DNA of 64,000 nucleotides from Cyanophora paradoxa CCMP329 (lineage: Eukaryota; Plantae; Glaucophyta). Positions 32,713 to 44,541 of the stretch are shown one piece after another; the first letter of the stretch is position 1; each line of letters starts with the position of its first letter. The DNA lies in contig QPMI01000517.1 of assembly GCA_004431415.1 (NCBI GenBank), forward strand, positions 62,001 through 126,000, written 5' to 3'. Below the pieces are notes generated by a model. It did no database searches and was not told the origin of the DNA. It saw only the letters and a program-made list of their open reading frames with translations. A program made the translations under genes and the position numbers.

Positions 32713-35700
32713 ATGGCAAGCCCGCGTGCAGGCCTGTCTCCGCCTCGCAACGACGGCGGAACGACGGTGTTCCTCGACCCCAACACGGAGGCCCTGGACA
32801 TCAAGGTTGGCGTCGTCCAGACGAACCCCGACTTCATTGTCGCGCTCGGCAACGTTAACGTCAACGCCGATCCTGAAAATGCCGTTGGACATGGTCCACG
32901 TCGCGAGCCGACACGCTCGGCGCGGTCCAGAGGCCTTGATACCAATTCCGGGAAGGCAGCCAACAAGAAGCCGGGCATTCTGTCGCGGGCCATCGGGTTG
33001 TTCAGCCCGCCCCCCCGTCAACCGCAGCCGGCTCCGGCTGCAGCTAAATTGCCCCCGGCTTATCCTGCAAGAGCCCCCGTCGCCCCTGCTGCAATCGGGC
33101 AGCTGCATGCGCAGGCCCCGCCAGTCGCGAAATCACAAGCTGTTGCGGCTAACGGCGGGAGCTCAAGCGACAGCCCGGGCATCTTTTCGAGTTTCATTGG
33201 CATGTTCAACACGTCGCACGATCCGCCGCCAGCGCCTGCGCCAGCGCCGTCCTCTGACGACCATGCGCACCCACGTGCACGTGCACGCACGACCTCGAGC
33301 TCTGCAGCTGCCTCAAACTTCCAGCACCCAGACGGCGTACGCGCGGCGAAGAAGGGCTCTTCAAAGAAGGGGCAGCGGGGGCACTACGACGTGTGCGTCG
33401 CAGCGGTGGCCGGCCGCGGGCCATTCAGCGTTCGCCGCGCCAGACAGTTACAGTCGCTGACACGAGCGCGTGCACCGCAAACAGCATGATCTCGTACTCT
33501 CGTCGCAACAAGGAGGCCGCCCAGTACCTTGTGAACGAACTGAAGGGCGAGAACTTCGACGTTTGGGTGCGTCAGTGATCGTCGAGTCATTGTCGACTTC
33601 CAGTCAGAGTTTCTGATGCGCCCCGTCGAGCAGGTCGACTGGTTCGTCAGACAATTGCGAGCCTTCACACACATATGCATTCATAACGCTGCTTACTATT
33701 GATTTCGGTCCCTCGAGCTCGAGCTCCCAATCCGTTGTTGATTTCCGATTTCTTTTTTCTACAGGCAGAACATTCCTCATGGCAGCGGTGCGATAAGTTT
33801 TATTCAAATCTTTCTGGTCTGCAACCTTCGCATCGCCTGCTGATCTCCAACCATACTATGATATGCATCCCGCGGGGCGCAGACTGGTACAATCCCTTCG
33901 AATTCATAATTTCATATAGCCGCCCATGCATATCATAGTATAACCACAACATTGAATTGTTGCGCAGGCGGGCAGAGATCGCGGCCGGAATCGAGGTCTG
34001 AAATTATTTCCAGCCTTGCGCATGCAGCTCCCCGATCGAAGAAGAGTTCAAATATTTGCCGCAGTGCTCGGACAACGTCGTCTTCTTGCTCTCGCCGGAC
34101 TGGGTCAAAAGTCAGGAGTGCCGCATCGAGTAAGCAGCTCCTGGACGCGGAAAAAGTGCCTATCGATATTTACGTTCTTTGGCCTGCGCATGCAGGTACG
34201 AAATCGCGATGGAGAACAACAAGCGGCTCGTCCCCGTCCTCCTCGAATCATGCGACACGGTCCCAGAGGTACGCAGCTGTTCATTATAATGAACAGCTAA
34301 TGAAAAGGCTAATAAGCCTTTTCTTTGCCGTTCATGTATCGTTTCAATTGTGGCTGACTGTGACATCGCGACCGGTATCCAGGAACTGAGTGCAATCAAC
34401 TGGCAAGCTTTTCATGATCACCGCCGTACCGTCGAGTTAAGCTAATTATAAATTAAACAAACTGCGCACGTGCATGCGCAGGATCTACATGAACGGAAAG
34501 TCCAAATGGGATGTTGCGGTGAAGAGCGTGGCCAACGCGTGCCACGTGCGACTTTGCTATTATGACGAGAGCTAGCCATATGCATGGCGCTGCCAGATAT
34601 ATAAAACGCGTGATTTCTCTTCATCGCAGACGGACATGGAGGCTTTAAGGCTCCACACCCGTCTTCTTGTTCGTGCCCGCGAGTGTACGTCAATCCTTCG
34701 GCCGCGTGCCGTCTCCTGGACTGACGTCGGCCGCGCAATCATGATCAGGGATCGAAGGCGGGAGGTATGAGCCAAAGAGATCGAGCGCGCGCTCAAGACG
34801 CACGCATGTTAATCTTCGGTCCCCGTCCAGGCACCCCCGGTCCTCCACCCTCGAGGAGGGCCGCTACCTGGAACAAGCAGTCGCATGGCTCAAGCGGGTG
34901 CGTGCCGTCTCTTCGCGTTTCATTTTTAGAGCTTTGTTGCTTATTATCCTCGCAATTCGCGGCAAAGATTGAAGACGGCGAGCTCGCGATGAAGGCTACC
35001 CCCGAGCAAATTGAATTCATCAAAGCAAGCGCTCGCTACGCAAGACGGAAGAAGATCTTCACGGTCTCGTGTCTCTCTTTCATTTTCATCGGTAAGCGCC
35101 AGCTTCGTTGAATACTATATTTTATGTCTTAAGCTTGGTCGCGGCTCAAATAAACCCTAAGCTTGTTCAAGCTTTTCCAAGTATGGGTTATTTACGCCCC
35201 CACGCAGCTGTTGTCATCGCCGCCATCATCGCTATCAGTGCGCAGTGACATTAGCGTAGTCGTAAACAGCAGTTGATTCTGCAACCTGTTTAATTTGCAT
35301 CCGCGGCAGTCATGGCGATCGATGCCAGCCAGGCAAAAACCAAGGCGCAGGAAAGCGAGGCCCTTGCTCTCGCCCAAAAAGCCGAGGTGAGTTGCAGCGC
35401 GAGAATTCTTTGTTTGCTTGCAATCAACTAATTCGAATGAACGCATGCAGGCTGAAAAGCAAACGCTCCTCGCAACGCAAGCGAGGAAGGTCGCTGAAGA
35501 GAAAACTGTGCTGGCGCTGCAACAGACCGCCCTCGCCCTTCAGGTGCTATGCAAATGCGCGGCAGTCTGCGCGCTCTTCGCTTACTATAATCTGACGCGC
35601 GTGCACGCTTTCGTTAGAGGCAAATGACCGCATCGGCCTTGCAAGTCAGTGACAGAGATAAACAGGTGAATGAAAGACCCTATGACAGAGAAATTCCAGA

Positions 35701-44541: not shown

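Follow-up and report, generated by a model that had tools for sequence, protein, structure and literature searches.

A predicted type II TIR receptor gene on a bacterial-type frame in the glaucophyte alga Cyanophora paradoxa

The receptor gene and its neighborhood

The window analyzed here is a 64,000-nucleotide stretch of contig QPMI01000517.1 from Cyanophora paradoxa CCMP329. By three-frame reading and hand splicing, we modeled a receptor gene on the plus strand (32713..44541), which runs from the ATG at 32713 to the TAA at 44541 and joins 51 exons into 7,851 nt of coding sequence for 2,616 amino acids, with no internal stop. Its 50 introns have a median length of 75.5 nt and a GC content of 51%, compared with 59% in the exons; 49 have GT-AG borders, and the only GC-AG intron (34403..34481, plus strand) is flanked on either side by exons that match a paralogue. 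Among the 17 introns with a length divisible by three, 14 contain in-frame stops, and splicing is thus required. Two micro-exons on the plus strand are demanded by the reading frame. The first, of 8 nt (33634..33641), contributes a VDW motif following strand B of the TIR domain, which recurs in the paralogue and in bacterial relatives; the second, of 4 nt (33883..33886), contributes a DW motif following the BB loop, with a tryptophan that is nearly invariant in alignment A1. Both encode conserved TIR tryptophans, and a transcript that skipped one of them would go out of frame and leave the receptor inactive. The motifs quoted in an earlier sequence-only reading of this DNA (SQECRIE, HTRLLVRARE-W, LEQAVAWL, TPEQIEFIKAS, RRKK) were all found at their reported places.

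We used the joined spliced protein for checks of frame, hydropathy, charge and short motifs, and ran searches exon by exon or with the paralogue P0227. With exon 42 as the query, a set of 1.84 billion representatives yielded two true relatives, both EukProt gene models of Cyanophora paradoxa. P0227 (tig00000441_g707.t1, EukProt g707) is a protein of 1,761 amino acids with a TIR domain (Pfam TIR_2, E 5e-25), a transmembrane (TM) helix, weak WD40 matches and EGF modules. About 35 of the 51 exons align to it in order, from exon 2 through the EGF module of exon 48, the tiny TIR exons included. Because P0227 is colinear from TIR to EGF, the TIR and EGF parts belong to one gene, as the sequence-only reading had it; the possibility of two separate genes is ruled out by a paralogue that carries both in one chain and in the same order. 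Exons 49-51 have no homologue for comparison, and exon 50, of 32 nt, is the least certain of all. They are tied to the gene by their boundaries, as the second EGF module and the first WSC-like domain share one exon, and each WSC-like copy has its last strand in the exon that follows.

Public annotation appears to be limited to a 130-amino acid fragment of the gene, corresponding to exon 42. Splicing, which the sequence-only reading had proposed to check by RNA-seq, found no support in 17 same-species runs: for 32700-42600 next to none of the gene's words were present, in contig data that cannot prove absence, and four runs aligned to the 3' part (41400-44700) matched unrelated low-complexity sequence only. 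Taken together, we consider the locus a real and apparently intact gene whose predicted architecture is confirmed by homology. It is not a lone oddity but one member of a family that is expanded in the Cyanophora genome and includes a broken neighbor in the window.

This neighbor is a diverged tandem paralogue on the plus strand, which begins ahead of position 1 of the window, extends to about 26950 and is colinear with P0227. It comprises two TIR domains, linker, TM helix (near 7680-7830), a long coiled-coil stalk, propeller, tail (near 26250-26400) and a short tip that is not EGF-like. An exon encoding the end of the second TIR domain is interrupted by an LTR-type element (1560-6625), which has a 4-nt target duplication and two LTRs (TG...CA) of 437 nt that are identical to each other. 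The element has a 389-amino acid minus-strand ORF with no Pfam match; its insertion is recent, and it is probably non-autonomous. A Polinton-like virus (11371-22524), with perfect 431-nt terminal inverted repeats, a 6-nt target duplication, pPolB, an A32 ATPase and a 40-nt tandem array near 21740-22060, is inserted in an exon of the ectodomain. As both elements lie in exons, the TIR-TIR segment and the virus are parts of one broken receptor locus. Just 3' of the receptor gene, a repeat of about 1 kb starts near 44890 and again near 45810 (window 44790-47200), and a tyrosine-recombinase-like ORF is found on the minus strand at 46499-47158 (Pfam Phage_integrase, E 0.002). Sequence past 44790-47200 has a GC content of about 70%.

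Architecture of the predicted protein

The protein opens with a Pro/Ala/Ser-rich cytosolic extension (aa 1-223; 32713..33381, plus strand), recognized by its composition, which has no Pfam match and is probably disordered. The TIR domain follows (aa 224-349; 33382..34545, plus strand) and is spread over exons 1-10. It is supported by exon-wise Pfam matches, profile order, and paralogue match and model: TIR_2 matches exon 2 with an E value of 0.0017 and exon 7 with one of 0.17, each where the profile would place it, and a profile of 223 database TIR+linker units places exons 2, 7, 8, 11, 13 and 14 in order. The catalytic position is occupied by Glu-297 in an S-x-x-C-x-x-E motif (34128..34196, plus strand), with its codon split by intron 7. 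The corresponding residue is glutamate in 208 of the 223 units and invariant in alignment A1, and the S-x-x-C motif and the glutamate are kept from the bacterial relatives. These matches bear out the earlier description of a complete TIR domain with an NADase-type glutamate. A model of the TIR-linker-TM portion of the paralogue (pLDDT 93.6) displays a canonical TIR fold, with Z scores of 19.1 to Hydra TRR-2, 18.1 to SARM1 and 17.9 to MyD88, and its top structural matches include SARM1 together with scaffold TIRs (MyD88, TLR1). A glutamate at this position also occurs in many non-enzymatic TIR domains. We nevertheless regard the algal TIR domain as probably an NADase enzyme.

A helical linker (aa 350-424; 34630..35054, plus strand), defined by profile and paralogue match and ending in RRKK, connects the TIR domain to the membrane. 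It shares homology with the final part of the nSTAND1 module, and its profile matches nSTAND1-TM-WD40 proteins immediately before their TM helix. In the paralogue model the linker forms three helices, and one continuous helix (residues 189-234) passes through the membrane. The single TM helix (aa ~428-448; 35064..35314, plus strand; exons 14-16) is assigned as an N-in signal anchor from hydropathy and flanking charges. It contains the sole membrane-grade hydrophobic segment of the protein (aa 430-448, mean KD 3.16; the next best, at 1.64, is poly-Ala), and the flanking charge is +6 before and -1 after the helix. The sequence-only reading of one TM helix after RRKK in an N-in protein thus stands, and the predicted topology is type II, with the TIR domain inside and about 2,170 amino acids outside. 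Exons 16-19, which match the paralogue, encode an Ala/Gln/Lys-rich coiled-coil stalk (35315..35814, plus strand) together with the helix found at the start of the bacterial ectodomain; the consensus of the bacterial relatives has the same pattern. After the stalk lies a basic motif of the RRRxL type, RRRQL (36012..36026, plus strand), a possible convertase cleavage site. P0227 and the upstream paralogue each have a similar motif in the corresponding position.

The ectodomain begins with a divergent β-propeller-type region of about 1,100 amino acids (36111..41517, plus strand). WD40-like blades had been proposed here. The clearest blades lie in exons 31-32 (38379-38822), Pfam recognizes one weak WD40 blade in exon 32 (E 0.001), and exon 42 is weakly propeller-like; the rest of the propeller is divergent. 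Few blades of a regular WD40 array are detectable exon by exon or in the paralogue, and those matches are weak. A two-cysteine tail encoded by exon 46 (41518..41641, plus strand) corresponds to the terminus of bacterial TIR-TM-WD40 and nSTAND1-TM-WD40 proteins. A profile built from 26 such tails in the database matches exon 46 with an E value of 1.2e-6 among 2,073 window pieces, and HHalign of algal paralogue ectodomains with the bacterial family brings the final blades and the tail into register (E 6.8e-9). Its two cysteines, invariant in the bacterial family and kept in the algal gene, would fit an extracytoplasmic disulfide. Proteins with this tail end within 50 amino acids of it in 25 of 26 database cases; the algal gene continues for about 840.

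This extension on the plus strand starts with two EGF/laminin-EGF-like modules in exons 47-48 (41775..42095; weak Pfam matches, E 0.00085 and 0.007), which are common to P0227 and P0228. A poly-Ala and Pro/Thr spacer (42180..42320) was read directly from the sequence. It is followed by a WSC-like domain with 4 cysteines (42333..42745), in the same exon as the second EGF module and with its last strand in exon 49, then by a Pro/Thr spacer that leads into three Cys-rich C-x-W repeats (42912..43181). A second WSC-like domain with 3 cysteines (43218..43559), its last strand in the 32-nt exon 50, shares 30% identity with the first (E 2e-5). The Ser/Thr/Cys-rich terminal exon 51 (43640..44541) adds at least five C-x-W repeats, giving at least eight in total, and has weak Pfam matches to Paramecium_SA and PSI. 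WSC clusters make up 26 of the 30 Atlas neighbors of the first WSC-like domain (0.93). Neither copy matches Pfam WSC (PF01822), and both are cysteine-poor in the stretches counted, compared with about eight cysteines in the full WSC set. A PDB sequence search with the first WSC-like domain and exon 51 gave nothing significant, and single-sequence folding of exon 49 gave a model that was not used (pLDDT 38). Together, the EGF matches, the WSC neighbors and the C-x-W repeats agree with the EGF/WSC-like/Cys-rich ectodomain first suggested. Tips vary across the algal family: those of P0227 and P0228 consist of EGF modules only, and the upstream paralogue has a short tip of another, non-EGF kind.

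Bacterial relatives and origin of the frame

A search with exon 2 led to a Tolypothrix TIR-linker-TM-WD40 protein, and one with exon 46 to the last 50 amino acids of a Rhizobium TIR-nSTAND1-TM-WD40 protein. The TIR+linker unit of the paralogue has 26 other matches of about 43% and up to 46% identity, which are bacterial where named and include Chloroflexota; among all 27 matches there is no other eukaryote where the source is given. Most of the 26 relatives have one TM helix, and many finish in a two-cysteine tail. The unit is present in more than 1,300 database clusters, and the bacterial proteins that contain it appear to be a modular receptor family. In bacteria, it occurs as one copy or as tandem copies, fused to other sensors or effectors such as CHASE2, FGE-sulfatase, LRR, CHAT and NACHT (P0008, P0015, P0024, P0062, P0108). 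The sequence-only reading had placed the scaffold among cyanobacterial/actinobacterial TIR-WD40 proteins. A bacterial TIR-linker-TM-WD40 frame is indeed found, and it is fuller than first read, since the tail of exon 46 and a linker matching the end of the nSTAND1 module belong to it. The nearest named relatives include Chloroflexota, and the TIR domain did not group with the main cyanobacterial clade.

In a tree of TIR+linker units, the algal sequence occupies a long branch beside metagenomic proteins. Inheritance from the main single-TIR cyanobacterial clade was rejected (p-AU 0.0008), with a group that was drawn after the tree had been seen and with a long algal branch; because of these two features, and because the tree has cyanobacterial sequences outside that clade too, the origin may yet be plastid. 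Horizontal transfer from bacteria is likely. There is no P-loop NTPase between TIR domain and sensor, and no cytosolic Walker A motif in the gene or its paralogue; the sole pattern match, located in the ectodomain and missing from the paralogue, was rejected. Membership of the NLR/STAND class was likewise rejected, since the TIR domain is joined directly to the linker without a P-loop NTPase. With a linker that corresponds to the final part of the nSTAND1 module, the family looks like a STAND receptor minus its NTPase, and the scaffold most likely derives from a TIR-nSTAND1-TM-WD40 receptor that lost this domain.

We examined the genomic context of the bacterial relatives. Two of the Chloroflexota type belong to a conserved four-gene operon (L003 3586-11736; L004 4592-12789) that encodes an SH3-type protein, TIR-TM-WD40, SLATT_1 and TPR-S plus MAP3K_TRAF_bd. 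The operon has no PADLOC system match and is a candidate for an undescribed defense system. SLATT and TPR-S/MAP3K_TRAF_bd genes are parts of nucleotide-signal conflict systems, and the operon hints at nucleotide signaling in such a system. Around three other bacterial relatives there are no defense-like neighbors, and ordinary signaling or metabolic genes lie beside several.

In the literature on Cyanophora TIR, WD40 and transmembrane proteins, on SLATT with TPR-S and in TIR surveys, we found neither a description of this architecture in algae or glaucophytes nor an experimental test of any bacterial TIR-linker-TM-WD40 member. The gene is best described, from its sequence, as a eukaryotic, extended variant of an annotated but little-studied bacterial family.

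A possible mode of action and comparison with known systems

These features can be combined into a receptor-enzyme of type II topology at the cell surface or in endomembranes, which would act in defense by ligand-triggered NAD+ cleavage; we favor this reading over the others and hold it, as a whole, to be evenly balanced. An algal lineage would have acquired a bacterial TIR-linker-TM-stalk-WD40-tail gene, which would then have gained introns while its propeller diverged and eukaryotic extracellular modules were appended past the old C-terminus. The propeller and the WSC/Cys-rich tip may bind a multivalent foreign surface, for example a glycan, and binding would cluster the receptors. TIR activity requires TIR self-assembly. 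If the stalk, the membrane helix and the last linker helix form one continuous helix, clustering outside would bring the TIR domains together inside; in a protein that lacks an NTPase switch, the simplest trigger would be such clustering, driven by ligand and relayed through the stalk. The assembled TIR domains would cleave NAD+ at Glu-297, and an ADPR-type signal or a drain of NAD+ would be the defense output. Of the individual elements, a role in defense has about an even chance, and a glycan ligand falls somewhat below that. More tentatively, and with the balance tilting against it, the genes may constitute a pattern-recognition system new to eukaryotes, an inverted Toll-like family of bacterial derivation in which a shared scaffold carries swapped tips (EGF, WSC-like, Cys-rich and others) for different non-self surfaces and fires its own TIR NADase straight through the membrane without adaptor or NTPase, the gene studied here being a glycan-sensing member.

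The same receptor could instead be a non-immune sensor of surface, adhesion or envelope stress, with a tip that tethers the alga's own glycans and a TIR domain that gives an NAD-derived signal. WSC-like domains on long Pro/Thr- and Ser/Thr-rich spacers with surface-antigen-like repeats recall yeast Wsc1-type sensors, and the ordinary signaling or metabolic genes beside several bacterial relatives point the same way. We consider this reading unlikely, as family expansion, variable tips and a decayed tandem copy would be more typical of defense genes, and the lack of RNA in standard culture argues against a housekeeping role. Less likely again is a TIR domain that serves as a non-enzymatic scaffold in Toll-like style and recruits another TIR protein of the genome by TIR-TIR contact. 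Fold matches to the TIR domains of TLR, MyD88 and IL-1R score equal to SARM1, but the glutamate and the S-x-x-C motif have been retained from bacterial relatives, and bacterial TIR domains are mostly enzymes. Finally, the lack of RNA matches, the annotation of exon 42 only, the neighbor broken by two elements and the lack of homologues for exons 49-51 would fit a gene copy that is silent or starting to decay, or whose far end (second WSC-like domain and exon 51) lies outside the same transcript, an improbable reading given 2,616 codons without stop or frameshift, canonical splice sites throughout, the exon structure that joins the second EGF module to the first WSC-like domain and places the last WSC strands in the next exons, and a terminal ORF that lacks a separate signal peptide.

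Next to nothing is known of the immune receptors that unicellular algae have at their surface. If the receptor-enzyme reading is correct, a Toll-like layout has arisen again, reversed, from a whole bacterial receptor with added eukaryotic sensing modules, and a single chain would lead from an outside ligand to NAD+ cleavage. The gene would also provide a test case for the large bacterial TIR+linker family and for STAND receptor function after NTPase loss.

Several systems resemble the predicted receptor in part. Bacterial TIR-linker-TM-WD40 proteins such as Chloroflexota MCP4143398.1 and Tolypothrix WP_264267989.1, whose only annotation is 'TIR domain-containing protein', have TIR, linker, single N-in helix, stalk and WD40-type region in the same order, with a two-cysteine tail in the Chloroflexota type; the algal gene differs by its 50 introns, 223-amino acid N-terminal extension and strongly diverged propeller, and by some 840 amino acids of EGF, WSC-like and Cys-rich sequence beyond the tail. 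Bacterial TIR-nSTAND1-TM-WD40 STAND receptors (Rhizobium QIO48709.1) share the N-terminal TIR, the same pre-membrane linker, the TM helix, propeller and tail, but have an NTPase, and hence a nucleotide switch, that the algal protein lacks. Bacterial STAND receptors are considered putative antigen sensors of multicellular bacteria (PMC10907252). Among the C. paradoxa paralogues, tig00000441_g707.t1 is colinear from TIR through the EGF pair; this protein and tig00001027_g6381.t1 end after that pair, whereas the gene studied here adds about 700 amino acids with two WSC-like domains and Cys-rich repeats.

Like Toll-like and IL-1 receptors, the predicted protein is single-pass with a cytosolic TIR domain and a large extracellular sensor, but it has the opposite orientation, no LRR or Ig domains and a bacterial-type TIR domain with an enzyme-type glutamate (PMC7075850, where TIR classes are surveyed). 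Neither the scanned exons nor the paralogue gave an LRR match, the TIR domain is N-terminal, there is no signal peptide, and the charges indicate N-in. The proposed reversal of Toll-like topology is thus supported, TLR membership was rejected, and the likeness in layout is convergent. SARM1, plant TNL and Thoeris ThsB TIR NADases have the TIR fold and the catalytic-position glutamate in common with the algal receptor. They are intracellular, whereas here clustering would be driven across the membrane. Fungal Wsc1-type sensors and WSC lectin-like domains share a WSC-like module on Ser/Thr/Pro-rich spacers, from which the algal receptor is set apart by its cysteine-poor WSC variant, type II topology and enzyme-type cytosolic domain.
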